Source of the DNA: Dicyema japonicum
Lineage: Eukaryota; Animalia; Dicyemida
Assembly: GCA_011109175.1 (NCBI GenBank)
Contig: RDEW01000029.1
Span: 406,158 to 470,157, forward strand
Direction: 5' to 3'
DNA: 64,000 nt
Shown one piece after another: positions 1,966 to 64,000 of the stretch. Position 1 is the stretch's first letter. Every line of letters begins with the position of its first letter. The notes under the pieces are model-generated. The model did not search any database and had not been told where the DNA came from. It saw nothing but the letters and a program-made list of their open reading frames with translations. The translations under genes and the position numbers were made by a program.

Positions 1966-2079
1966 AATTAGAAATAAAATTTGTTTAATATTTTTTAGTT
2001 TTCTATTTGTTTTGTTATTTAACATGATTTACTTTTACGGAAAACCCAATTAATCAATACGAATTTTATCCTTAAACGT

Positions 2080-2137
2080 GGCGTCATGCCTGTTGTTGTG
2101 GTGGCGCTCAGTGCGGCTTTTGCATGGAAGAGAACCG
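2080..2137 (+). ncRNA. Candidate HDV-like ribozyme leader, copy 1 (degenerate)
   Basis: P1 GGCGTC/GGCGCT, P4 TGC-7nt-GCA, and J4/2-like TGGAAGA. The 5' strand of P2 appears deleted. Homologous to 6719-6780 and 63456-63515. Confidence 0.4.
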
Positions 2138-2214
2138 TTCGACTTTCCCTACCTTTCTGCGATCTTCAGACGGGTAGCTTACCAATTCCCCAGTTTTCTC
2201 TCTACTACTTCTGT

Positions 2215-2238
2215 GATGTAGAACCTAATCCGGGACCC
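2215..2238 (+). other. 2A-like (StopGo) motif DVEPNPGP upstream of APE
   Basis: gat gta gaa cct aat ccg gga ccc = D-V-E-P-N-P-G-P, in frame with the APE start. Confidence 0.8.
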
Positions 2239-3479
2239 AACTGCACGTTGAGTATTCCACAACTAAATGTAAATGGAATCCGCAATAAAGTATTGGAATT
2301 ACGATCCCTCTTATCCGATTTGAGAGTGGACATTGCCCTCATCCAAGAATCGAAGTTTTCTATAAAGTCCCCAACACCATGTTTTCTTGGATGTTGTGTA
2401 CTTCGCAGGGACCAAACAAGAAGTTTCGGAGGAGGATTATTGACGATCGTTAAGGATGGACTTAAATTCACTGATGTCACCCCTTCTGTATTTTATCTCT
2501 TCGAAGGGGATCTGGTCAAGTACTACTTCCTACATCCCCAACCTATTGAGCCTGTGTGGACTAAAGGATCTGCTACTATGCGGAGACCTAAACGCGAAAA
2601 ATCCACTCTGGCTCCAGACTCAATCAGTCGACAGTCGCGGCGAATACATCCTTTCCCTGATCAATGATCTGACTATCCTTAATGATCCGGACACCCACAC
2701 AAAAACTCCGTCCCGGAAAAGGAACAGTCCGACATCCCCGCACCTGTCTCTCTGCTCTCCTTTTATGGCTGGATGTATTTCATGGAATTTTCGTTATGGT
2801 TTCTCAAGCGACCATAACCCCATTGTGTTGAGACTTAGAAGGCCTATTTGTTCACCGTGTTGTTCTACAAAGTTCAAAAATTACTTGAAAGCCGACTGGC
2901 AAGGTTTCAGGACGTATGTGGACAATAGTCTCCTTGACCTTACTATGGTTAATTGCACAGTAGAGGAGACGGCCAAGATTCTGTCCGCTATCATTCTGAA
3001 AGCTGATAAACTATTTATACCTGTCGCCTCTTACAAGAAGTTCAATCCAAGATTATCATCACAAATTGTGTCACTCATCAAGAAACGAGATGCGCTGAAG
3101 AGGAATAGAACACAGACCAATAACTCCTTATACTCCATACGTTCATTGAATACCAAATTATCTGAGCTTATCCGAACTAACAACAGACTCAAATTGAGTC
3201 GCCTAGTCGGACGACTATGTGACAAAAACTCTTGTGCCACATTTTGAAAAGCGCTAAGAAGGAAAAACCCTACCTACTACCAATGATCAGGACACCATGT
3301 TTTGGTCCTATGCGGACGACCTAATTATCGCTGCAAGAAATAAATCTCCTTTCATGGCTGTAGCAACTGTTCAGATACACCTAAACCTAATTTGTGACTG
3401 GCTATCTGCAAATACGTGATTAGTTAGTTTGTTTAAGCGTGATCTCTGGTGATTTTATTATTATTAATAGCAATATCCG

Positions 3480-6627: not shown

Positions 6628-6960
6628 TTAGACGCGTGGCGTTATGTGGTGCTGCGTGGTTAATCGGTTGAAGTTTTCTGATTGCTTGTCTCTTCATCTT
6701 CTCTCTTCCTATTAGAGTGGCGTCATGTGATCCACCTGGCTAGGTGACGCTTAGTGCCAGGCCGGCATGAAAAAGAATCATTTGCTTTCCCCACTCTACT
6801 GGAGGGGATTCCACAACTGCATGTATTGGACGTCTTATCTTTTATGCTGATTCCGGATGGAATCTGTTTCTGTAGAAGTGGAAACTAGATACAATAATTA
6901 ATTGTTTACTTTAACTTCTTTCGCGGTGCATCCGGGGTTAATAAATAAATAAAAAATAAA
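6628..6960 (+). mobile_element. Short non-autonomous derivative of the I/Ingi-like LINE (RIME/NARTc-like)
   Basis: Contains the LINE 5' leader (6719-6796) and the LINE 3' end cttctttcgcggtgcatccggggttaataaa, compared with ctttctttctcggtgttccggggttattaaa at the 49.8-kb LINE end (minus strand). Candidate TSD TAATGTCA at 6620-6627 and 6961-6968. Confidence 0.6.
6719..6780 (+). ncRNA. Candidate HDV-like ribozyme leader, copy 2
   Basis: GGCGTC-ATG-TGATCC-ACC-TGGCTA-GGT-GACGCT-TAG-TGC(caggccg)GCA-TGAAAAA-GAATCA. P1, P2, P3 and P4 can all pair in HDV order. The catalytic-C position is T. Confidence 0.55.
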
Positions 6961-7539
6961 TAATGTCAGAGGCTTGAAATATATCTACAAACGAATATGC
7001 CAAGAATACTTACAGTGCCATTATTGGATGCTTAAGTGTGGACTATTTGAGTTACATAATGATTACCGATTTATCCTCCTACGATCAGAACTTTACCACT
7101 ATGGAGAGGGTTCGCTATTCACAAGAGTTATTTGAATTCAATCTAAAAGTTTTATTACATGAACGATGGATGATAGTCTCGTGTGTGGCACAGGCGGGAA
7201 CTTAATTATTTATTTGAATCATTTGTTCCTATTATAGACCAATACACTTTCCGAGGAACCATATCAGCTATCGGTCCCCTCAGGCAGAACACACACTTTA
7301 TTTTAAGCAGAGAACAGTTATCATAGCTAATCGATTAGGGAGAATCGAGAAAAGCTATTCACTTTTTTGTTTTCTTTTTCTTGGGTGTGTGGGCTATTTA
7401 GACGATCCGGTTTGCTTTCATAGCACTCACACCATGCAACAATATAGACATCGATAAAGAACATATCCGTCATAAAAGTCCTGTAATGACTGACATTATT
7501 AGCATTAAATTTCATAAAACCCCGCAATACATGGTAGAC

Positions 7540-49200: not shown

Positions 49201-49782
49201 TTTCGATGATTGAAAAATATTCATCTTTAAAAATAAATGAGTAATTCTTATTTCCAATATGTTTCAATTTTTCCAAAAAATTGTTGCTCCAAACTTTGTT
49301 TCATTGGATAATTCATAAATAGGGCGATTTGTATTTTGACTTTATATATTCTAAATTTTAACATAAAAACTTTACTTTATTGACTTTAAAATTTCAAAAT
49401 TTTGACCATTTTTGACATTATGACAAATTTATCTAAAAATTTTTTTTTTAAATATGAAAAAACTAATCAAAAACTTTATTAAAATATGGAATAATGTAAT
49501 TCAAAACGTTTCTATGTAAAAAAAATTTTCGGTATTTAGATAATAATTTTACAATATAAAAATTTTTATTGAATAATATTGATGTGGAAGAGAATTTTTC
49601 GAATAGTCGTATAAGCATTGAGAAGTATTGTTTTTTCATTTTTGTAATAGAAAAAACTTATTGATAGAAAATATACATCTTTATTTCACATAAATCGTTA
49701 CTAAAATCTAATTTTTGAATATTCTAACTGCGTATTCTACTGTAAAGTGAGTTTTTGCTATCATACTTATAAATTTATTTTT

Positions 49783-51660
49783 ATTTTAATAACCCCGGGA
49801 ACACCGAGAAAGAAAGACAAAAAATCAAACAGTTAGGTGATCCCAGTCCTCGCAATCAATTGTGCCATTCGACGTGTGTGATCTTCCATCGTCCCCACTA
49901 CTTTCTGGAAGAACCTTCTCTCGGTCATGCAGAGGAATCCTGATCTGGGAGGGAAATTTCTTATCCAATCGGTTTTCTCTTCCCATGGAAAGGATCGGGC
50001 GAAGCGGATTTTCATCTTCCTCACAGACGCGAAAAATCCGGAGCCACGACTACGGATCTTAACTTCCATGAGTAGTGGTGAGTCGACTGTTGATCCATTA
50101 CGTGGGCAAAGCATACTAATTGTTTTCTGGTGTATCGAGTTGACTCTTTGGACCAAAGACTCCGATGGCGCGAATCTCCATGCAACGGAGGCATACTCAA
50201 CGGCAGGCGCGATTGTTTGTTGGTATAGGGTAGAAACGTTAAAATCCATTTTCCTCGTAATCTTTCGGACAAGGGCGCGTAAAACGTTAACTTTCTGGAG
50301 GCCCCTGGTAATCATGTCTTTAGCGTGGGAGTTGAAATTGAGTAGACTGTCGTACTTGACTCCAAGGACAGTGGGGACATTGTCACTGGAATCCGAGTGG
50401 GACCAATAAAGATACTCGGTTCATCCTTAGAACGACGGTCCGAAGTGAAAGTGGAACAGATGGATTTGGTTGCAGAAATCGTAAGTCGATTGCCAACAAT
50501 CCAATCGTGGAGACTGTTCAATTTGCCTGAGTTTAAAGGATGCGACTTGCGTCGAGCGGTTCCGTATTGCAATGACTACATCGTCTGCGTAGGATAATAG
50601 CAGGGAATCTTCGTCTCCATCATTAGGTAGGTCGTGTAGGAATAGGTTGAATAGAATTGGTAAAAGTGGAAACCCCTGGGGTACCCCGTTCGGTAGTAAT
50701 CATGATCTATATCTGAGATCACCACTGACTACTCTTTCACGTCTTCCAGACAAAAAGTTAGCCAGCCATAATTTCATATTCGGACGAATATTAGTAGAAA
50801 ATATTTTTCCAACCAGGATTTTCCTCGAAACAGTGTCAAAGGCTTTGTTGATGTCAATAGAAACGAAGATTGTGCGTTTGTGAGGCAGGGGATGGGTGTT
50901 AAACCGTCTGCAATGAACTGCGATAGGGTAGCCAAGTATGTAGCGGTGGACCTACAGCGGAGGAAACCATGTTAAAATATAGGACGTGGAAGATACGGAA
51001 TAATGACTGATAATACAAGTTTCTCCATAATTTTTGACAGTGTGCAGGTAACGGAAATAGGCCTGTAGGAGGCATGTTCAGTCTCTGGTTTCCCAGCTTT
51101 CAATATCGGTCTGATGATAGAATTCTTCCAAATCTTAGGAATAATATTATAGTTAATGGACAGGTTGTATATTTGCGTGAGGTAGCCAATTGAGTAGTGG
51201 CTTAGGTGTTTTAGGTGAATAGAAGATACTTTGTCAGGCCCGCACGCCCGTGAGCTCTTTAATCTGGTGATCACATCCAAGACTTGGTCATCTCTGAATA
51301 GTTCGTGATAAGGTTCCTTCTTCGGTTTATGGGCATGCACCTTAATGTCTAGGTGTTTTGAGAATGGTTTGAAGCTAATTCCAGCGTAATGTTTCATAAG
51401 GGAGTTAGGATTTAGGTGGCATAAGTGTTCAAAAGAAGACTTTCCGGTTCCGTCTGCATCATCCAGCTCCGACTTGACTTGTTTAAGAGTTTTCCAGAAA
51501 TGTCGGGATGTACTTTTCCTGTCGAGGTGGTTAACTAAGATGCTGCCATCTCTTGTCCTTGTGTTCTTTTATGCTCTAAGAGATCCTTATTTGGTTTTCT
51601 TGTTAGTTGTCTGAAGGCTGTCAAAGACTTCAGTCCAACAGATGGCATCTCTTCAGCCGG
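49783..51660 (-). mobile_element. I/Ingi-like LINE, RT + intact 3' end (array copy A)
   Basis: RACGPDKVS, YRPIS, SIDINKAFDTV, GVPQG and YADD, ending GIT* plus the family 3' UTR. Related copies at 53890-55405, 57063-58850 and 61082-63540. Confidence 0.9.
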
Positions 51661-51999
51661 TCTCATTCTGACCTGAACTATTTTTGGTAGATATCCGTAA
51701 ATATTCTAGACTATGCATAGAAGGAATTAACATAAATCCAATACATCCAGTAGGTTTTGTAAACTTTAATGTTCAATATATGCAAAGAAAATAATATCCG
51801 AGTAAGCATTAGTGACCTCATTGAGTCTAGAGTAGATGGAATGAGAAAATCAGATATTTTATAGTAGCACCTAGTAATAAAAATGATAGACCTGTTAGAT
51901 TGAAATGTTTCATTGATGAAAGATTAAACAAAAAGCTGTTTTTAGAAAATTCGTGAGTTTATAAAAAAATTAAGCAGGACATTTTCTAATAACAGTCTT

Positions 52000-52550
52000 A
52001 ACCTATTCAACTACCTTCCTCATTGATCGAGGCATAGCAGTTGACGACACATTAGTTTCTCCGTTATCAAAAAACATGCTACGATCCTGAAGTAGACACA
52101 GCTTTTCCTCGGTTATAGGAGAGTGACTTCTATGCACTAGCCATCCAGAGGATTCTGCAATATTCAATTCTGTGTCTTTAAACACTGAAATAAAATAGTG
52201 TGCTGAGGCTTCTTCTTAATTTTTCCCGATAGATATTTTTTTATCAATTTCGACATGTTGTATTTCCATCAATTTTGACTTTGTCAAGTCTTTCGCACTT
52301 TCAATGTTGTACTTTTGGGAAATGAATTCTACGATAGTGGTGTTTTTTTAATTCCCGCTATTCTTAGGCATTAATTTGCCTTATGTTCCAAGTCACCATA
52401 TAATTGGAGGATCATTCGTTTGCTTTGTTACTGACAGACTCACGACCTATTCCAAATTTATTTCTTGGTAAAGTCATTCTTTGTTAGCCGGTTGTAAGAA
52501 ATCTGCGGATGTTTTTATCGATCTGTTCAAATTCTGGAGGCTCTATATCA
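52000..52550 (-). mobile_element. R4/Dong-like fragment (post-RT region)
   Basis: RMTLPRNKFGIG; IAESSGWLVH..EEKLCLLQDRSMFF. Repeated in later units. Confidence 0.6.
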
Positions 52551-52552
52551 AT

Positions 52553-52630
52553 CAGTGGTTCCCAACCTGGGTTCCGAGGAACCCCAGGGTTCGACGTAGA
52601 CAGTTTTGGGGTTCCGGGAAATTTATTATA
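52553..52630 (+). mobile_element. hAT (Buster-like) left end fragment; also at 55722 and 59741
   Basis: cagtggttcccaacctgggttccgaggaacccc is typical of hAT termini. Confidence 0.7.
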
Positions 52631-52642
52631 AATTATTTAATA

Positions 52643-53887
52643 CAGTGCAACCCCGAATTGGGGTAATCTTTCCCAACTTTCAGGTTTTCCACAAAAAAGA
52701 GGGTTTTCCTTAAATTTGGGTCTCCCCAGTTCGACTTCCTACCTTAATAACATAACCAAGACGGATAATTACAATTATTATTTTTTAATAAAAAAATCTG
52801 TTAATTTTAATCGAGTGTTTTTTTCCCCGGGTGGCATAGTGGTTAGGTGTTCGGGCTTAAGTGGCTTAGATTACGGGTTCGAATCTCGCTTCTGTTCACC
52901 TAGTAGAAGGTTCCACGTATCTACGATGCAGGTTTGACGGTGAGGCCCGTCATCAGTGGATACTCACGGCGGAACTGGATTGTCTAGAAAAAACCAACAC
53001 ACAAGAAAATAAAAAAAAGAAGTCAAGAAAATTCCTTGGTTTTTACGATTAGTTAAAATTAACGTGTTGCCCTGCCTATAAGGAGCTATAAATATTATGG
53101 CTCTCGTGAAAAGGCCATTATTATTTGTTTTTTTCGCATGGACTCATATGGCAGAACATAATATTTGCTTTGAATCTATTGACGACCATGGAGGAACTAA
53201 TCGAAAAAAACAAAAATGGACACCAATGCCAAAAAATGCTCATCCGCAACGTACTTGTGTAGAATCAAGGGATCAAACCGAGAAAGCCTTGATCCAATTC
53301 GTCGCGATCACTTAGTTTAGTCTTTTTGGTTTAACAGTGGTCTTTGGAATTGATTAAATTAAAATTAAATCTGTATAAATCAAAGACATTTTCCTGAGTC
53401 TCTTGTTTAATAACATCTAGCAGCATTGTAAAAACGCATTCCGCATTATTTATAACTTGTTGATCATCCAAATGTTCCAGAAATTGATAGCTGCAGTCCT
53501 CTTCATCACTACTATGATCATCCCAGAAGATCTCCAAAATCGCATTTTCCACAATATCCGAATCAATTAGACTTTCTCCGGTGCCTCTTTTTCCCGACAT
53601 TCATATTCCATAGCCTTTTCAAAGCAATGTCGTATTGAAGTTTCTGTAATCTCGCCCATACCAATTTCGAACATGAAATAGCATCTATTTGAGCTACAGG
53701 ATTTTTATCATAGATAATCGTTTTCATTATCCAATTATTGAAACGATTCTAAAATGCATGTATTATTCCTTGGCCACATGGCTAAATAAGGTAGTTGTGT
53801 TTCCTGGAAAAAATATTATCTCAACGTTTGAATATTGGGCAGAAACAGCATTGCATTGTCAATAAATAATGTTATTTTACTCTCCCC
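52643..53887 (-). mobile_element. Tigger/pogo 3' part with TIR and inserted SINE; repeated in each unit
   Basis: TA + cagtgcaaccccgaattgggg is the reverse complement of the TIR ending at 36293. The body matches 35410-36270. Confidence 0.85.
52826..53125 (+). mobile_element. tRNA-derived SINE, full-length, 10-bp TSD; copies at 55995-56296 and 60014-60315
   Basis: A box TGGCATAGTGG and B box GGTTCGAATCT. TSD TGTTTTTTTC at 52816-52825 and 53126-53135. Confidence 0.9.
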
Positions 53888-56800
53888 ACTACGTCTGTTA
53901 TCTTCCATCGTCCCCACTACTTTCTGGAAGAGCCTTCTCTCGGTCTTGCAGAAGAATCCGATCAGGGAAAGAAATTTCTTATCCAATCGGTTTTCTCTTC
54001 CCATGGAAAGGATCGGGCGAAGCGGATTTTCATCTTCCTCACAGACGCGAAGAAATCCGGAGCCACGACTACGGATCTTAACTTCCATGAGTAGTGGATC
54101 AACTGTTGATCCATTACGTGGGCAAAGCATACTGATTGTTTTCTGGTGTATCGAGTTGACTCTTTGGACCATAGACTCCGATAGCGCGAATCTCCATGCA
54201 ACGGAGGCATACTCAACGGCAGGCGCGATTGTTTGTTGGTAGAGGGTAGAAACGAAAATCCATGTTCCTCGTGGTCTCGGACAAGGCGCGTAAAACGTTA
54301 ACTTTCTGGAGGCCCCTGGTAATCATGTCTTTAGCGTGGGAGTTGAAATTGAGTAGACTGTCGTACTTGACTCCAAGGACAGTGGGGACTTGTCACTGGA
54401 ATCCGAGTGGGACCAATAAAATACTCGTTCATCCTTAGAACGACGGTCCGAAGTGAAAGTGGAACAGATGAACTTGGTTGCAGAAATCGTAAGTCGATTG
54501 CCAACAATCCAATCGTGGAGAGTGTTCAATTTTGCCTGAGTTTAAAGGATGCGACTTGTGTCGAGCGGTTCCGTATTGCAATGACTACATCGTCTGCGTA
54601 GGATAATAGCAGGGAATCTTCGTCTCCATCATTAGGTAGGTCGTGTAAGAATAAGTTGAATAGAATTGGTGAAAGTGGAACCCTGGAGTACCCCGTTCGG
54701 TAGTAATCGTGATCTAGATCTGAGATCACCATTGACTACTCTTCCACGTCTTCCAGACAAAAACTTGGCCAGCCATAATTTCACATTCGGACGAATATTA
54801 GTAGAAAATATTTTTCCAACTAAGATTTTCCTCGAAACAGTGTCGAAAGCTTTATTGATGTCAATAGAAACCAATATTGTGCGTTTGTGAGGCGGAGGAT
54901 GGGTGTTAAAACCGTCGGCAATGAACTGCGATAAAGTTGCCAAGTATGTAGCGGTGGACCTACCGCGGAGGAAATAATGTTGAAATATAGGACGTGGAAG
55001 ATACGGAATAATGACTAATAATACAAGTTTCTCCATAATTTTTGACAGTGTGCTGGTAACAGAAATAGGCCTGCAGGAGGCAGGTTCTGTCTCTGTTTTC
55101 CAGCTTCAATATCGGTCTGATGATAGAATTCTTCCAAATCTTGGGAATAATATTATAGTTAATAGACAGGTTGTATATTTGCGTGAGATAGCCAATTGCG
55201 TAGTGGCTTAGGTGTTTTAGGTGAATAGAAGATACTTTGTCAGGCCCGCACGCCCGTGAGCTCTTTAATCTGGTGATCACATCCAAGACTTGGTCATCTG
55301 TGAATAGTTCGTGGTAAGGTTCCTTCTTCGGTTTATGGCATGCACCTTAATGTCCAGGTGTTTCGAGAATGGTTTGAAGCTAATTCCAGCGTAATGTTTC
55401 ATAAGTTTTTATCAATTTCGACATATTGTATTTCCATCAATTTTGACTTTGTCAAGTCTTTCGCACTTTCAATGTTGTACTTTTGGGAAATGAATTCTAC
55501 GATAGTGGTGTTTTTTTAATTCCCGCTATTCTTAGGCATTAATTTGCCTTATGTTCCAAGTCACCATATAATTGGAGGATCATTTGTTCTGCTTTGTTAC
55601 TGACAGACTCACGACCTATTCCAAATTTATTTCTTGGTAAAGTCATTCTTTGTTAGCCGGTTGTAAGAAATCTGCGGATGTTTTTATCGATCTGTTCAAA
55701 TTCTGGAGGCTCTATATCAATCAGTGGTTCCCAACCTGGGTTCCGAGGAACCCCAGGGTTCGACGTAGACAGTTTTGGGGTTCCGGGAAATTTATTATAA
55801 ATTATTTAATACAGTGTAACCCCGAATTGGGGTAATCTTTCCCAACTTTCAGGTTTTCCACAAAAAAGAGGGTTTTCCTTAAATTTGGGTCTCCCCAGTT
55901 CGACTTCCTACCTTAATAACATAACCAAGACGGATAATTACAATTATTATTTTTTAATAAAAAAATCTGTTAATTTTAATCGAGTGTTTTTTTCCCCGGG
56001 TGGCATAGTGGTTAGGTGTTCGGGCTTAAGTGGCTTAGATTACGGGTTCGAATCTCGCTTCTGTTCACCTAGTAGAAGGTTCCACGTATCTACGATGCAG
56101 GTTTGACGAGTGAGGCCGTCATCAGTGGATACTCACGGCGGAACTGGATTGTCTAGAAAAAACCAACACACAAGAAAAATAAAAAAAAGAAGTCAAGAAA
56201 ATTCCTTGGTTTTTACGATTAGTTAAAATTAACGTGTGTGCCCTGCCTATAAGGAGCTATAAATATTATGGCTCTCGTGAAAAGGCCATTATTATTTGTT
56301 TTTTTCGCATGGACTCATATGGCAGAACATAATATTTGCTTTGAATCTATTGACGACCATGGAGGAACTAATCGAAAAAAACAAAAATGGACACCAATGC
56401 CAAAAAATGCTCATCCGCAACGTACTTGTGTAGAATCAAGGAATCAACACCGAGAAAGCCTTGATCCAATTCGTCGCGATCACTTAGTTTAGTCTTTTTG
56501 GTTTAACAGTGGTCTTTGGAATTGATTAAATTAAAATTAAATCTGTATAAATCAAAGACATTTTCCTGAGTCTCTTGTTTAATAACATCTAGCAGCATTG
56601 TAAAAACGCATTCCGCATTATTTATAACTTGTTGATCATCCAAATGTTCCAGAAATTGATAGCTGCAGTCCTCTTCATCACTACTATGATCATCCCAGAA
56701 GATCTCCAAAATCGCATTTTCCACAATATCCGAATCAATTAGACTTTCTCCGGTGCCTCTTTTTCCCGACATTCATATTCCATAGCCTTTTCAAAGCAAT

Positions 56801-59800
56801 GTCGTATTGAAGTTTCTGTAATCTCGCCCCATACCAATTTCGAACATGAAATAGCATCTATTTGAGCTACAGGATTTTTATCATAGATAATCGTTTTCAT
56901 TATCCAATTATTGAAACGATTCTAAAATGCATGTATTATTCCTTGGCCACATGGCTAAAATAAGGTAGTTGTGTTTCCTGGAAAAAATATTATCTCAACG
57001 TTTGAATATTGGGCAGAAACAGCATTGCATTGTCAATAAATAATGTTATTTTACTCTCCCCACTACGTCTGTTATCTTCCATCGTCCCCACTACTTTCTG
57101 GAAGAGCCTTCTCTCGGTCTTGCAGAAGAATCCGATCAGGGAAAGAAATTTCTTATCCAATCGGTTTTCTCTTCCCATGGAAAGGATCGGGCGAAGCGGA
57201 TTTTCATCTTCCTCACAGACGCGAAGAAATCCGGAGCCACGACTACGGATCTTAACTTCCATGAGTAGTGGGTCGACTGTTGATCCATTACGTGGGCAAA
57301 GCATACTGATTGTTTTCTGGTGTATCGAGTTGACTCTTTGGACCATAGACTCCGATAGCGCGAATCTCCATGCAACGGAGGCATACTCAACGGCAGGCGC
57401 GATTGTTTGTTGGTAGAGGGTAGAAACGGAAAAATCCATGTTCATCGTGGTCTTTCGGACAAGGGCGCGTAAAACGTTAACTTTCTGGAGGCCCCTGGTA
57501 ATCATGTCTTTAGCGTGGGAGTTGAAATTGAGTAGACTGTCGTACTTGACTCCAAGGACAGTGGGGACATTGTCACTGGAATCCGAGTGGGACCAATAAA
57601 GATACTCGGTTCATCCTTAGAACGACGGTCCGAAGTGAAAGTGGAACAGATGGATTTGGTTGCAGAAATCGTAAGTCGATTGCCAACAATCCAATCGTGG
57701 AGACTGTTCAATTTGCCTGAGTTTAAAGGATGCGACTTGCGTCGAGCGGTTCCGTATTGCAATGACTACATCGTCTGCGTAGGATAATAGCAGGGAATCT
57801 TCGTCTCCATCATTAGGTAGGTCGTGTAGGAATAGGTTGAATAGAATTGGTAAAAGTGGAAACCCCTGGGGTACCCCGTTCGGTAGTAATCATGATCTAT
57901 ATCTGAGATCACCACAGACTACTCTTTCACGTCTTCCAGACAAAAAGTTAGCCAGCCATAATTTCATATTCGGACGAATATTAGTAGAAAATATTTTTCC
58001 AACCAGGATTTTCCTCGAAACAGTGTCAAAGGCTTTGTTGATATCAATAGAAACGAAGATTGTGCGTTTGTGAGGCAGGGGATGGGTGTTAAACCGTCTG
58101 CAATGAACTGCGATAGGGTAGCCAAGTATGTAGCGGTGGACCTACAGCGGAGGAAACCATGTTAAAATATAGGACGTGGAAGATACGGAATAATGACTGA
58201 TAATACAAGTTTCTCCATAATTTTTGACAGTGTACAGTAACGGAAATAGGCCTGTAGGAGGCATGTTCAGTCTCTGGTTTCCCAGCTTTCAATATCGGTC
58301 TGATGATAGAATTCTTCCAAATCTTAGGAATAATATTATAGTTAATGGACAGGTTGTATATTTGCGTGAGGTAGCCAATTGAGTAGTGGCTTAGGTGTTT
58401 TAGGTGAATAGAAGATACTTTGTCAGGCCCGCACGCCCGTGAGCTCTTTAATCTGGTGATCACATCCAAGACTTGGTCATCTGTGAATAGTTCGTGATAA
58501 GGTTCCTTCTTCGGTTTATGGGCATGCACCTTAATGTCAGGTTTTGAGAATGGTTTGAAGCTAATTCCAGCGTAATGTTTCATAAGGGAGTTAGGATTTA
58601 GGTGGCATAAGTGTTCAAAAGAAGACTTTCCGGTTCCGTCTGCATCATCCAGCTCCGACTTGACTTGTTTAAGAGTTTCCAGAAATTGTCGGGATGTACT
58701 TTTCCTGTCGAGGTGGTTAACTAAGATGCTGCCATCTCTTGTCCTTGTGTTCTTTTATGCTCTAAGAGATCCTTATTTGGTTTTCTTGTTAGTTGTCTGA
58801 AGGCTGTCAAAGACTTCAGGTCCAACAGATGGCATCTCTTCAGCCGGTCTCATTCTGACCTGAACTATTTTTGGTAGATATCCGTAAATATTCTAGACTA
58901 TGCATAGAAGGAATTAACATAAATCCAATACATCCAGTAGGTTTTGTAAACTTTAATGTTCAATATATGCAAAGAAAATAATATCCGAGTAAGCATTAGT
59001 GACCTCATTGAGTCTAGAGTAGATGGAATGAGAAAATCAGATATTTTATAGTAGCACCTAGTAATAAAAATGATAGTCCTGTTAGATTGAAATGTTTCAT
59101 TGATGAAAGATTAAACAAAAAGCTGTTTTTAGAAAATTCGTGAGTTTATAAAAAAATTAAGCAGGACATTTTCTAATAACAGTCTTAACCTATTCAACTA
59201 CCTTCCTCATTGATCGAGGCATAGCAGTTGACGACACATTAGTTTCTCCGTTATCAAAAAACATGCTACGATCCGGAAGTAGACACAGCTTTTCGTCGGT
59301 TATAGGAGAGTGACTTCTATGCACTAGCCATCCAGAGGATTCTGCAATATTCAATTCTGTGTCTTTAAACACTGAAATAAAATAGTGTGCTGAGGCTTCT
59401 TCTTAATTTTTCCCGATAGATATTTTTTTATCAATTTCGACATGTTGTATTTCCATCAATTTTGACTTTGTCAAGTCTTTCGCACTTTCAATGTTGTACT
59501 TTTGGGAAATGAATTTTACGATAGTGGTGTTTTTTTAATTCCCGCTATTCTTAGGCATTAATTTGCCTTATGTTCCAAGTCACCATATAATTGGAGGATC
59601 ATTCGTTTTGCTTTGTTACTGACAGACTCACGACCTATTCCAAATTTATTTCTTGGTAAAGTCATTCTTTGTTAGCCGGTTTTAAGAAATCTGCGGATGT
59701 TTTTATCGATCTGTTCAAATTCTGGAGGCTCTATATCAATCAGTGGTTCCCAACCTGGGTTCCGAGGAACCCCAGGGTTCGACGTAGACAGTTTTGGGGT

Positions 59801-62800
59801 TCCGGGAAATTTATTATAAATTATTTAATACAGTGCAACCCCGAATTGGGGTAATCTTTCCCAACTTTCAGGTTTTCCACAAAAAAGAGGGTTTTCCTTA
59901 AATTTGGGTCTCCCCAGTTCGACTTCCTACCTTAATAACATAACCAAGACGGATAATTACAATTATTATTTTTTAATAAAAAAATCTGTTAATTTTAATC
60001 GAGTGTTTTTTTCCCCGGGTGGCATAGTGGTTAGGTGTTCGGGCTTAAGTGGCTTAGATTACGGGTTCGAATCTCGCTTCTGTTCACCTAGTAGAAGGTT
60101 CCACGTATCTACGATGCAGGTTTGACGAGTGAGGCCGTCATCAGTGGATACTCACGGCGGAACTGGATTGTCTAGAAAAAACCAACACACAAGAAAAATA
60201 AAAAAAAGAAGTCAAGAAAATTCCTTGGTTTTTACGATTAGTTAAAATTAACGTGTGTGCCCTGCCTATAAGGAGCTATAAATATTATGGCTCTCGTGAA
60301 AAGGCCATTATTATTTGTTTTTTTCGCATGGACTCATATGGCAGAACATAATATTTGCTTTGAATCTATTGACGACCATGGAGGAACTAATCGAAAAAAA
60401 CAAAAATGGACACCAATGCCAAAAAATGCTCATCCGCAACGTACTTGTGTAGAATCAAGGAATCAACACCGAGAAAGCCTTGATCCAATTCGTCGCGATC
60501 ACTTAGTTTAGTCTTTTTGGTTTAACAGTGGTCTTTGGAATTGATTAAATTAAAATTAAATCTGTATAAATCAAAGACATTTTCCTGAGTCTCTTGTTTA
60601 ATAACATCTAGCAGCATTGTAAAAACGCATTCCGCATTATTTATAACTTGTTGATCATCCAAATGTTCCAGAAATTGATAGCTGCAGTCCTCTTCATCAC
60701 TACTATGATCATCCCAGAAGATCTCCAAAATCGCATTTTCCACAATATCCGAATCAATTAGACTTTCTCCGGTGCCTCTTTTTCCCGACATTCATATTCC
60801 ATAGCCTTTTCAAAGCAATGTCGTATTGAAGTTTCTGTAATCTCGCCCCATACCAATTTCGAACATGAAATAGCATCTATTTGAGCTACAGGATTTTTAT
60901 CATAGATAATCGTTTTCATTATCCAATTATTGAAACGATTCTAAAATGCATGTATTATTCCTTGGCCACATGGCTAAAATAAGGTAGTTGTGTTTCCTGG
61001 AAAAAATATTATCTCAACGTTTGAATATTGGGCAGAAACAGCATTGCATTGTCAATAAATAATGTTATTTTACTCTCCCCACTACGTCTGTTATCTTCCA
61101 TCGTCCCCACTACTTTCTGGAAGAGCCTTCTCTCGGTCTTGCAGAAGAATCCGATCAGGGAAAGAAATTTCTTATCCAATCGGTTTTCTCTTCCCATGGA
61201 AAGGATCGGGCGAAGCGGATTTTCATCTTCCTCACAGACGCGAAGAAATCCGGAGCCACGACTACGGATCTTAACTTCCATGAGTAGTGGGTCGACTGTT
61301 GATCCATTACGTGGGCAAAGCATACTGATTGTTTTCTGGTGTATCGAGTTGACTCTTTGGACCATAGACTCCGATAGCGCGAATCTCCATGCAACGGAGG
61401 CATACTCAACGGCAGGCGCGATTGTTTGTTGGTAGAGGGTAGAAACGGAAAAATCCATGTTCTCGTGGTCTTTCGGACAAGGGCGCGTAAAACGTTAACT
61501 TTCTGGAGGCCCCTGGTAATCATGTCTTTAGCGTGGGAGTTGAAATTGAGTAGACTGTCGTACTTGACTCCAAGGACAGTGGGGACATTGTCACTGGAAT
61601 CCGAGTGGGACCAATAAAGATACTCGGTTCATCCTTAGAACGACGGTCCGAAGTGAAAGTGGAACAGATGGATTTGGTTGCAGAAATCGTAAGTCGATTG
61701 CCAACAATCCAATCGTGGAGACTGTTCAATTTGCCTGAGTTTAAAGGATGCGACTTGCGTCGAGCGGTTCCGTATTGCAATGACTACATCGTCTGCGTAG
61801 GATAATAGCAGGGAATCTTCGTCTCCATCATTAGGTAGGTCGTGTAGGAATAGGTTGAATAGAATTGGTAAAAGTGGAAACCCCTGGGGTACCCCGTTCG
61901 GTAGTAATCATGATCTATATCTGAGATCACCACTGACTACTCTTCCACGTCTTCCAGACAAAAAGTTGGCCAGCCATAATTTCATATTCGGACGAATATT
62001 AGTAGAAAATATTTTTCCAACCAGGATTTTCCTCGAAACAGTGTCAAAGGCTTTGTTGATGTCAATAGAAACGAAGATTGTGCGTTTGTGAGGCAGGGGA
62101 TGGGTGTTAAAACCGTCTGCAATGAACTGCGATAGGGTAGCCAAGTATGTAGCGGTGGACCTACAGCGGAGGAAACCATGTTAAAATATAGGACGTGGAA
62201 GATACGGAATAATGACTGATAATACAAGTTTCTCCATAATTTTTGACAGTGTGCTGGTAACGGAAATAGGCCTGTAGGAGGCATGTTCAGTCTCTGGTTT
62301 CCCAGCTTTCAATATCGGTCTGATGATAGAATTCTTCCAAATCTTAGGAATAATATTATAGTTAATGGACAGGTTGTATATTTGCGTGAGGTAGCCAATT
62401 GAGTAGTGGCTTAGGTGTTTTAGGTGAATAGAAGATACTTTGTCAGGCCCGCACGCCCGTGAGCTCTTTAATCTGGTGATCACATCCAAGACTTGGTCAT
62501 CTGTGAATAGTTCGTGATAAGGTTCCTTCTTCGGTTTATGGGCATGCACCTTTCTGAATGGCAGCGCTGATAATTTCTGCGGCCTCATCAATAGATCGTA
62601 TTAAGGAGGATAATCTCCGGGCCAAGAATTTATCGACAAGGTTACTGAAACCAGACCAGTCAACCTTCGTATAATCCTTGAATCTTTTTGAATCGGCGGG
62701 CCGTCTCCTGTATCGTCGAAGACCTCTCAATTTTAGATAGATTGGATTGTGGTAAAAGACGTTCCAGGAAATGAGTCCAGCCAGAGAACGTGAGCATAGT

Positions 62801-63393
62801 GTTAAGTCGGGGGATGTGTAGCTATCAGTCATCCTTAATGGGGTTCTCGTATGTGAGTTAAGGTTGTTCAGTATATTCAGGTCAGGAAGATAATTTGCAA
62901 TGAATTCTCATCGGTTATCAGAGGATTGGGAAGTGAGCCAAACTGGATGTCGTGCATTAAGATCCCCACATAATAGTAGATTTTTTTATGTTGAAATGCG
63001 TGATAAATCAGGGGTGTAAGATGACGGACACGATCCTTGTGGAGGAATATATAAATTAGACAAATGGATCCAAAAGGACGGGAATAACTCGATTTTGACA
63101 GTAATCTGCTCCAAAGTCTTGTCGATGCCAAGAAGAACTGAGGTTCGTTGAGTTGTATCCATAAAAGGAATGTCGTTCTTTATAATAGTAAGTAGTCCTC
63201 CTCCGCGTCCTCCCTGACGATCTTTACGGATCACTGTGTATCCGGGAAAAGAGGGTGTTGGTATGGAGGGAGATAGCTTGGACTCCTGTATTAAAGCGAG
63301 GTCAGCCTCATTTTCGCGGATGAGTGCCCGGAGTTCAAAGATTTTCTTCCTGATCTCATTCGTATTCAGTTGTATAATTGTAAAACTTCTCCA

Positions 63394-63429
63394 TGGACCA
63401 GGATTGGTTTCGACGTCTCCACATAGAAG
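63394..63429 (-). other. Canonical 2A (StopGo) motif LLCGDVETNPG-P
   Basis: ctt cta tgt gga gac gtc gaa acc aat cct ggt cca, immediately upstream of and in frame with APE. Confidence 0.9.
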
Positions 63430-63455
63430 ACCACCGGACGGTGGGGAGAAGCTGT

Positions 63456-63515
63456 TGGCTCTTTTCGTTCTTTTTTGGAATGGGTGATAACATTTCTGGT
63501 GAGCCACATGACACC
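63456..63515 (-). ncRNA. Candidate HDV-like ribozyme leader, copy 3 (retains the catalytic-C position; P1 and P3 partly decayed)
   Basis: GGTGTC-ATG-TGGCTC-ACC-AGAAAT-GTT-ATCACC-CA-TTC(caaaaaa)GAA-CGAAAA-GAGCCA. P2 TGGCTC/GAGCCA is a perfect 6 bp. Confidence 0.55.
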
Positions 63516-64000
63516 ACGCTAACGCCACGCTAACAACATTTCTCAGAATCACAGAATCGTTATAAATTTATAAACCAACATTGACATAATATAAAAGATA
63601 AATTGCTCCGTAGTTCATTTTAATAGATTACTTTCCAAGCATCTTTTGATTAAAAGTATATTTAAAAAAAAAATTATAGTTATTTTTTACTTCAATAAAG
63701 ACTTACTTCATGACAACTCTCCATTCTGACCAGAAATATTTTTGGTAGATATCCGTAAATATTCTAGACTATGCATAGAAGGAATTAACATAAATCCAAT
63801 ACATCCAGTAGGTTTTGTAAACTTTAATGTTCAATATATGCAAAGAAAATAATATCCGAGTAAGCATTAGTGACCTCATTGAATCTAGAGTAGATGGAAT
63901 GAGAAAATCAGATATTTTATAGTAGCACCTAGTAATAAAAATGATAGACCTGTTAGATTGAAATGTTTCATTGATGAAAGATTAAATAAAAAGCTGTTTT

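Follow-up and report, generated by a model that had tools for sequence, protein, structure and literature searches.

Our analysis showed that the window, by which we mean the whole stretch of 64,000 nucleotides of Dicyema japonicum DNA under study, contains dead copies of single-ORF APE-RT LINEs carrying stops, frameshifts and internal deletions. We consider it likely that these dicyemid elements have a common front end, in which an HDV-type ribozyme knot (or what was formerly one), an AUG start and a 2A skip precede the enzyme. The features identified are listed in Table 1.

Table 1. Features of the LINE copies and of the SINE-like element in the window, with the evidence for each.
Feature	Position	Strand	Evidence
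Decayed copy of the abundant ~3.0-kb single-ORF LINE fam1	61084–63550 (5′ limit approximate)	−	blastn vs L035, 92–94% identity
Reverse-transcriptase region with stops and frameshifts (fam1)	61084–62552	−	Pfam RVT_1 on L035; map
AP-endonuclease region with stops (fam1)	62547–63393	−	Pfam PF03372/PF14529 on homologous open stretch of L035; map
2A/StopGo-like peptide LLCGDVETNPGP (fam1)	63394–63429	−	Translation; genome-wide excess
Predicted skip, Gly / Pro codon (fam1)	63394–63396 (Pro codon)	−	2A motif
Copy-specific 60-nt in-frame leader deletion; other copies have 20 more codons (fam1)	63430–63431	−	Alignment of 30 copies; split match
HDV-like nested double pseudoknot, decayed copy (fam1)	63455–63515	−	Covariance-model match, 71.8 bits; pair counts
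Knot, 5′ half (fam1)	P1 63510–63515; J1/2 63508–63509; P2 63501–63507; P3 63498–63500; L3 63492–63497	−	
Knot, 3′ half, mutated (fam1)	P3′ 63489–63491; P1′ 63483–63488; P4 region 63468–63480	−	
Knot, end (fam1)	J4/2 63462–63467; P2′ 63455–63461	−	
Copy-specific 11-nt tandem duplication (fam1)	63513–63534	−	Alignment of 30 copies; frames
Fragment of the diverged LINE family fam2, with large internal deletion	2075–3417	+	Covariance model, 29.4 bits; map vs L043
Leader and start (fam2)	AACGT leader 2075–2079; P1 2080–2085; in-frame ATG 2086–2088	+	Coordinates, frames
Knot remainder, P2 5′ strand decayed (fam2)	P3′ + P1′ 2100–2108; P2′ 2132–2138	+	Covariance model
2A/StopGo-like peptide FCDVEPNPGP (second LINE family, fam2)	2209–2238	+	Translation
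Short non-autonomous SINE-like element	6631–6963	+	Covariance-model match, 52.3 bits; 8 copies aligned, translated
Knot of the SINE-like element	P1 6719–6724 to P2′ 6775–6781	+	Covariance model

LINE copies in the window and their families

The fam1 copy aligned by blastn with a better-preserved copy in three blocks (63523–63425, 63430–62547 and 62552–61084). It has an internal deletion of ~390 nt, ends ~100 nt short of the 3′ end of the element and is interrupted by stops. The genome contains at least 40 copies of fam1 with 95–98% identity; an alignment of 30 copies showed a sharp 5′ end for the family. Pfam search of the better-preserved copy revealed Exo_endo_phos/Exo_endo_phos_2 directly 3′ of the 2A motif, then RVT_1, and nothing further. 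For the fam2 fragment, the part mapped by blastn was 2089–3417. The elements have the features of LINEs, namely 10–13-bp target-site duplications and, at the 3′ end, a stem-loop with a (TAAA)n-like tail after it, and ORF1 is absent from them. The sequence read comprised 20 genome loci, families beyond these 20 being counted only, and every copy read had a broken ORF, with a longest open stretch of 480 codons.

On the minus strand, the 3′ two-thirds of the fam1 LINE is present in four partial copies, all in the same orientation (62552–61084, 58851–57065, 55405–53891 and 51664–49774). Three of the four stop at one position of the element (about 2918 of 3013), and an unrelated repeated ORF fragment is found between the copies at a spacing of 3.2–4.0 kb. 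The array, at 49774–62552, has the appearance of a block duplicated in tandem.

Diverged LINE families and the SINE-like element were found to have a 3′ terminal hairpin in common, consisting of CUCGG, a 5-nt loop and CCGGG, and followed by GUUA and a (TAAA)n-like tail (L031:2990–3030; L035:3060–3110; the 3′ ends of L038, L042 and L043; window 6915–6963). The shared hairpin is probably the recognition site of the reverse transcriptase. At the other end of the elements, T-runs or short variable stretches often lie between the target-site duplication and the conserved leader (L035:86–105, L042:2314–2326 and other 5′ junctions), which suggests that nucleotides were added or slipped during second-strand synthesis.

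2A-like motifs in the window and in the genome

Translation of the fam1 copy gave LLCGDVETNPGP (63394–63429, −) followed by WRSFTIIQLNTNEIRKK, and that of the fam2 copy gave FCDVEPNPGP (2209–2238, +) followed by NCTLSIPQLNVNGIRNK. The strict 2A cores are DVETNPGP (63394–63417, −) and DVEPNPGP (2215–2238, +). A sequence-only reading of this DNA had placed the two peptides at these positions and strands, between a structured leader and the APE, and our translations bear it out: each peptide belongs to a decayed APE-RT LINE and precedes its AP-endonuclease by 6–9 codons. The Gly of the fam2 family has been lost in the window copy, while another copy of the same family (L043) reads LLLSGDVEPNPGP. 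In L035, a single frame is open from the 5′ AUG through the 2A and into 400 codons of APE, unlike the window copies, in which the frame from 2A to APE is interrupted by stops.

In the 67.5-Mb assembly (377 contigs), the degenerate DNA pattern for D[VI]ExNPGP had 365 matches versus none for the reversed pattern. Among the first 100 of the 365 matches there were at least 30 codon variants, and therefore the motif has been kept at the protein level, in many diverged families. A Leu-rich stretch lies 5′ of the motif in each of the 15 other families fetched, and wherever their downstream frame is still open the endonuclease starts 6–9 residues past the 2A. The contexts before D(V/I)E across families include LLILLCG, ILLLSG, LLTLG, LLLAG and LLLPCG.

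The protein relatives considered here are the best 150 from a library of 1.84 billion representative proteins. NPGP was found in the N-terminal region of 69 of these, and the strict motif in 29. A word-indexed protein search yielded one match only. The only named relative is a mite protein labelled 'Tcoingi protein-like', and this label is uninformative on clade. Many distant 2A-LINE relatives have a short conserved 'VFS'-type motif ~25 residues before NPGP, and in many of them 2A and APE are separated by a Cys-rich (PHD-like) finger, which is absent from the Dicyema elements; relatives showing the motif or the finger include P0006, P0009, P0024, P0028, P0075, P0082, P0084 and P0085.

Structure and covariation of the leader

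The leader was found to be an RNA domain of ~65 nt that starts 3–24 nt inside the LINEs and has the topology of an HDV-like ribozyme, i.e. a nested double pseudoknot with the order P1, J1/2, P2, P3, L3, P3′, P1′, P4, J4/2 and P2′. Across families, the element is conserved as nucleic acid from its 5′ end to ~65 nt irrespective of the reading frame. At L036:2343–2404, for instance, P1 GGCGUC is followed by AU, P2 GUGGUUC, P3 ACC, a 6-nt L3, P3′ GGU and P1′ GGCGCU; the 3′ half consists of two bases, a P4 hairpin of 5 bp, a C with five A's, and P2′ GAACCAU. P1 has 6 bp and P2 7 bp, P4 is variable, and J1/4 and J4/2 measure 2 nt and 6–7 nt, respectively. As in the HDV fold, P3′ abuts P1′ and P2 abuts P3, and P1 opens with G-U or G-C. 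J4/2 starts with C, then G or A, then A's, the C being absent in some copies.

A covariance model was built from P2 and P3 alone, with P1 excluded, and gave at least 150 genome matches at E < 1e-12. The pair statistics were calculated from the 17 matches at E < 1e-10 in the sequence read, with P1 written as a pseudoknot. In these, 88% of the cells were paired, versus 33–56% when the partners were slid by 1–3 columns, and compensatory (both-side) changes were present in 12 pairs; none of 500 shuffles reached the observed values. P1, which is independent of the model, was 89% paired and had three compensatory pairs. The helix variants include GGUUC/GAACC, GGCUC/GAGCC, GAUCC/GGAUC, GGUGUC/GUCACC and AAUGUC/GGCAUU. 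L042, L037 and L047 fit P1 only with a register shift of 2–3 nt, which is suggestive, and were kept out of the statistics. A related LINE from what is probably a second dicyemid genome also begins with this knot. The covariation shows that the structured leader proposed from the letters is real and HDV-like in topology, and the start coordinate of that earlier finding, 63515, is the first base of P1.

Recognition that P1 pairs with the strand following P3′ led us to drop several other models of the leader, namely a three-way junction, a hammerhead, for which there is also no CUGANGA core, and a tRNA-like cloverleaf or pol III A/B boxes. The first HDV descriptor used, which was too strict in J4/2 and too loose overall, matched shuffled and real sequences equally; it was replaced by alignment-based pair counts and a stricter descriptor. 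Folding energies calculated without pseudoknots were unremarkable (z −2.1 to +0.9).

Start codons and reading frame

The usual start codon is embedded in the knot, its A and U forming J1/2 and its G being the first base of P2. In six families or copies this AUG is in frame with the 2A and the frame between them is open; in a seventh, the in-frame AUG is found within P1 instead. The leader part of the ORF, 47–65 codons long, crosses the knot and a second hairpin and ends in the Leu-rich D(V/I)ExNPGP. The exceptions are fam1 and the L036 family, whose J1/2 AUG is not in the frame of the 2A. Typical copies of fam1 have an in-frame AUG at the 5′ end, 10–13 nt upstream of P1, so that the predicted cut would fall 3′ of their sole in-frame AUG. 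The same 5′-terminal ATG is present in the window copy (63537–63539, −), where the 11-nt duplication has put it out of frame.

These results do not agree with the sequence-only reading on three points. It had taken the out-of-frame ATG as a sign that translation may be non-canonical, whereas most families have the J1/2 AUG in frame and fam1 has its 5′ AUG in frame. The out-of-frame ATG that it reported proved to be mostly copy-specific damage, the duplication of the window copy being the case in point. And it had attributed an APE to a 'copy 3', most likely the element at 6631–6963 (+), which has the leader and neither 2A nor APE.

Within the knot part of the leader, fam1 and the L036 family use another reading frame than the other families do, and yet the helices are preserved. 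Therefore this stretch has been selected as RNA and not as peptide. Such RNA-level selection would fit a role of the 2A in discarding the leader peptide.

5′ ends of the elements and the predicted cut

Rfam searches, at the gathering thresholds and at E ≤ 10, found no relevant match in the window, in the well-kept leaders or in the foreign LINE leaders, the HDV-type families being included in the search. The Rfam models of HDV type are known to miss divergent members. The sequence of L3 differs in every family, and a 2-nt partner for P1.1 is present in most L3 loops, at varying positions. A C directly follows P4 in fam1, L036, L038, L039 and four of the seven SINE-like copies; in fam2, L047, L045 and L044 the position after P4 is T or the C is absent.

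Target-site duplications and copy alignments place the start of the element 8–24 nt upstream of P1. The conserved sequence upstream of the predicted cut amounts to about 4–8 nt in most families, 20–24 nt in fam1 and ~85 nt in the SINE-like element, and overall 3–24 nt of LINE sequence is retained there. All families have inherited a short leader whose last bases are ACGU or AGCGU, and a CGTG core is found at the 5′ edge of the element. None of the 30 fam1 copies starts at the predicted cut. For a ribozyme at the 5′ end of a retrotransposon the cut is expected to be the 5′ end of the mobilised RNA, and the copy starts contradict this. Because the genomic copies keep sequence 5′ of the predicted cut, the RNA that was copied into DNA must have been uncleaved. 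We infer from the fold that the leader may be a self-cleaving HDV-type ribozyme now, or may have been one formerly.

The SINE-like partner

The SINE-like element of ~330 nt is composed of a ~85-nt 5′ extension, the knot, ~150 nt of unrelated body, a 3′ stem-loop of LINE type and an A/T-rich tail. Neither 2A nor APE was present in the eight copies aligned. The first ~35 nt of the element partially repeat P1, J1/2 and the 5′ strand of P2, ~85 nt ahead of the knot. Seven more copies were found in the loci read, including those at L039:6799–6886 (−), L048:2246–2333 (−), L048:4363–4450 (+), L049:918–1005 (−), L040:3825–3912 (+) and L046:7059–7146 (−). Since the element keeps the knot and the 3′ end, the knot region would have a function in cis (promoter, ribozyme or tag).

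HDV-like folds in unrelated 2A-LINEs

A strict HDV-like descriptor was applied to eight unrelated 2A-LINEs, whose 5′ regions were taken from metagenome, SRA and mite contigs. A strong HDV-like site upstream of the 2A was identified in four of the eight (L053:351–420, L058:103–215, L056:159–245 and L052:386–455), versus 0–8% of shuffles. The four folds end between a few nt and about 130 nt before the 2A, and an AUG is located at the J4/2–P2′ junction in L053 and inside P1 in L058. As the sample consists of eight LINEs without a 2A-free control, a coupling of HDV-like fold and 2A outside Dicyema is to be taken as a lead rather than a result.

Probable dicyemid DNA in the octopus assembly

In the Octopus sinensis assembly GCA_006345805.1, contigs of 390–510 kb were found to carry the dicyemid LINE family. 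The loci are L051 (VCDQ01001009.1, 375041–384174), L060 (VCDQ01001570.1) and L061 (VCDQ01013128.1), and XP_029655350.1 and three cluster mates, which are annotated as octopus proteins, belong to the same family. The flank of L051 matched a contig of the Dicyema genome (G000:C173) at 91% over 2.8 kb, and L060 has dispersed repeats in common with that genome at 77–86%. Counts of CACGTG gave no separation of dicyemid from octopus DNA in repeat-rich stretches. Judging from these matches, the contigs are probably DNA of a related dicyemid parasite in the assembly of its host. At least three 'Octopus sinensis' RefSeq contigs, together with annotated proteins, look like dicyemid DNA.

Discussion

In the explanation that we favour, the knot would be a self-cleaving HDV-type ribozyme, or would once have been one, and it probably contains the information of an internal promoter too, in the manner of Pr77/L1TcRz in L1Tc. 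Translation would start at an ordinary AUG after a very short leader. The ribosome would then skip the Gly-Pro bond. The leader peptide, the residues of which are set by the RNA fold, would thereby be discarded and the APE-RT released with an N-terminal Pro.

The nature of the knot allows another reading, which we hold possible with considerable doubt: the knot, with its HDV-like topology, might be a structural 5′ element that does not cleave, the 2A working as in our main explanation. It might then be a ribosome platform on the embedded AUG, a tag for the protein of the element and/or the RNA image of an internal promoter. The unconserved L3, the atypically long J4/2, the C missing in some copies and the lack of an Rfam match all point this way, and so do the copy starts, since all copies keep sequence upstream of the predicted cut and no fam1 copy out of 30 begins there. 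Cleavage would, moreover, remove the start codon of fam1. The region is kept in the SINE-like element, as expected of a promoter or a cis-acting tag, and the CGTG core at the 5′ edge resembles the DPE core of Pr77. However, the match to the HDV fold is complete in the order and adjacency of the helices; in addition, a G-U or G-C opens P1, and P4 is followed by C and purines, the C in part of the families. Active R2 ribozymes show a similar looseness, and cleaner HDV-like folds are present at the same place in unrelated 2A-LINEs.

The other rivals concern the start codon and the 2A. The sequence-only reading proposed that a ribozyme-cut, uncapped transcript is translated from a non-AUG or otherwise non-canonical start, with the 2A setting the N-terminus. 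Besides the out-of-frame J1/2 AUG of fam1 and the L036 family, an in-frame GUG overlaps this AUG in fam1, the called ORF of L056, an unrelated 2A-LINE, has no AUG before the 2A, and HDV-like ribozymes promote translation initiation according to a claim of Ruminski 2011, as relayed by a citing paper. We nevertheless find this version improbable, given the J1/2 AUG that is in frame and open in six families or copies, the AUG inside P1 of the seventh, the in-frame 5′ AUG of typical fam1 copies, the 11-nt duplication that accounts for the frame loss in the window, and the absence of APE from 'copy 3'. It has also been proposed, by Odon et al. and Luke et al., for LINEs without ORF1, that the 2A is mainly a brake, which would reduce either the amount of APE-RT made per upstream product or protein abundance, and would not be a leader-shedding device. 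The Dicyema elements have no ORF1, and a 2026 preprint describes many retrotransposon 2A-like peptides as reducing protein abundance. A brake, which we think rather unlikely to be the main role, would leave unexplained why the leader is constrained at the RNA level rather than the peptide level, and it is compatible with our main explanation. Finally, both window copies are dead, and the motifs could be imagined as chance matches in junk DNA. This is next to impossible, and is refuted by the 365 matches versus none for the reversed pattern, the fixed place before the APE and the motif in 69 of 150 distant relatives.

Two questions remained from the work of Odon et al., namely why the 2A is always located 40–80 residues from the N-terminus in LINE ORF2, and what role the upstream piece has. 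In Dicyema, the upstream piece is an RNA knot under RNA-level selection, which gives a concrete and testable answer to their question. We put forward, as a tentative idea that may well prove wrong, that the 2A of single-ORF LINEs exists because the ORF must begin inside a 5′ HDV-like ribozyme/promoter module, and that this coupling is general and extends beyond dicyemids. In that case the RNA fold would dictate the first ~50–65 codons, the 2A would shed the resulting peptide, and the enzyme would start clean at Pro. It would follow for Dicyema, with its predicted cut inside the element, that the ribozyme divides the RNA into messages that have lost their cap and templates that stay intact.

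Comparison with known systems

L1Tc of Trypanosoma cruzi has a Pr77 promoter with a DPE core, the HDV-like ribozyme L1TcRz and the 2A sequence L1Tc2A. The Dicyema elements are similar to L1Tc and NARTc in that they pair a single-ORF APE LINE, which has an HDV-like fold at its 5′ end and an in-frame 2A preceding the endonuclease, with a non-autonomous partner of ~260–330 nt that has the 5′ signature and the 3′ end in common with it. As in L1Tc, the 5′ signature is common to several element families and a CGTG core is found near the 5′ end. They differ in other respects. L1TcRz cuts at +1, whereas P1 in Dicyema lies 3–24 nt inside the LINEs and ~85 nt inside the SINE-like element; the start codon embedded in J1/2 is a feature of Dicyema and not of L1Tc; and the activities of L1TcRz and L1Tc2A are proven in L1Tc, while those of the Dicyema knot and 2A are putative. 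L1Tc has an RNase H and a C-terminal chaperone region, and the ~3.0-kb Dicyema element is without an RNase H domain. Pfam found no RNase H in this element or in nine full-length relatives, in which only Exo_endo_phos and RVT_1 were detected; RNase_H is present in one more distant relative (P0133). The proposal of an L1Tc/Ingi-style cassette thus stands in part: the order of knot, 2A and APE-RT is conserved in many families and is accompanied by a short partner, while membership of the Ingi/I clade is not supported, there being no RNase H. 'Ingi-style' holds for the architecture and not for clade membership.

The knot resembles HDV-like ribozymes of R2 type in its nested double pseudoknot, in the C that follows P4 in part of the families and in the position of the fold, which overlaps or precedes the start of the ORF. 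In the latter, P1 has 6–7 bp, P2 at least 5 bp, P3 3 bp, P4 is variable and J1/4 has 0–2 nt. The helix sizes in Dicyema are within the range reported for R2 ribozymes, and the topology is that of the published HDV-like definition. However, L3 and P1.1 are well conserved within a lineage of such ribozymes, whereas L3 varies freely in Dicyema; J4/2 is 4 nt in HDV and 6–7 nt in Dicyema; and the Dicyema leader upstream of P1 is inherited and the knot matches no Rfam model. R2 SIDEs, which are non-autonomous deletion derivatives of R2, are likewise short elements made of the 5′ ribozyme region and the 3′ end of a LINE; they are specific to rDNA, whereas the SINE-like element of Dicyema is dispersed and has an extra 5′ extension of ~85 nt.

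Odon et al. (2013) have reported 2A-like motifs in animal APE-type LINEs of the clades Rex1, L2, L2A, Crack, CR1 and Ingi, where -GD(V/I)ExNPGP- is found 40–80 aa into the APE-RT ORF and ORF1 is absent from most of the elements. The Dicyema elements are similar to these, the 2A being 47–65 aa from the AUG and ORF1 absent; the sample of Odon et al. did not include dicyemids. RNA structure or a ribozyme upstream of the 2A is mentioned neither in that paper nor in the follow-up essay, nor in two recent large 2A surveys, which do not mention Dicyema either. In the literature searched, 'HDV-like ribozyme', '2A-like' and 'retrotransposon' occurred together only in T. cruzi papers. The present elements link the LINE-ribozyme and LINE-2A literatures, which have been joined there only for trypanosomes, and provide an L1Tc/NARTc-like LINE/SINE pair in a spiralian animal together with many short natural 2A variants. 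Their layout is known from trypanosome LINEs, and their parts are known separately from other animals.
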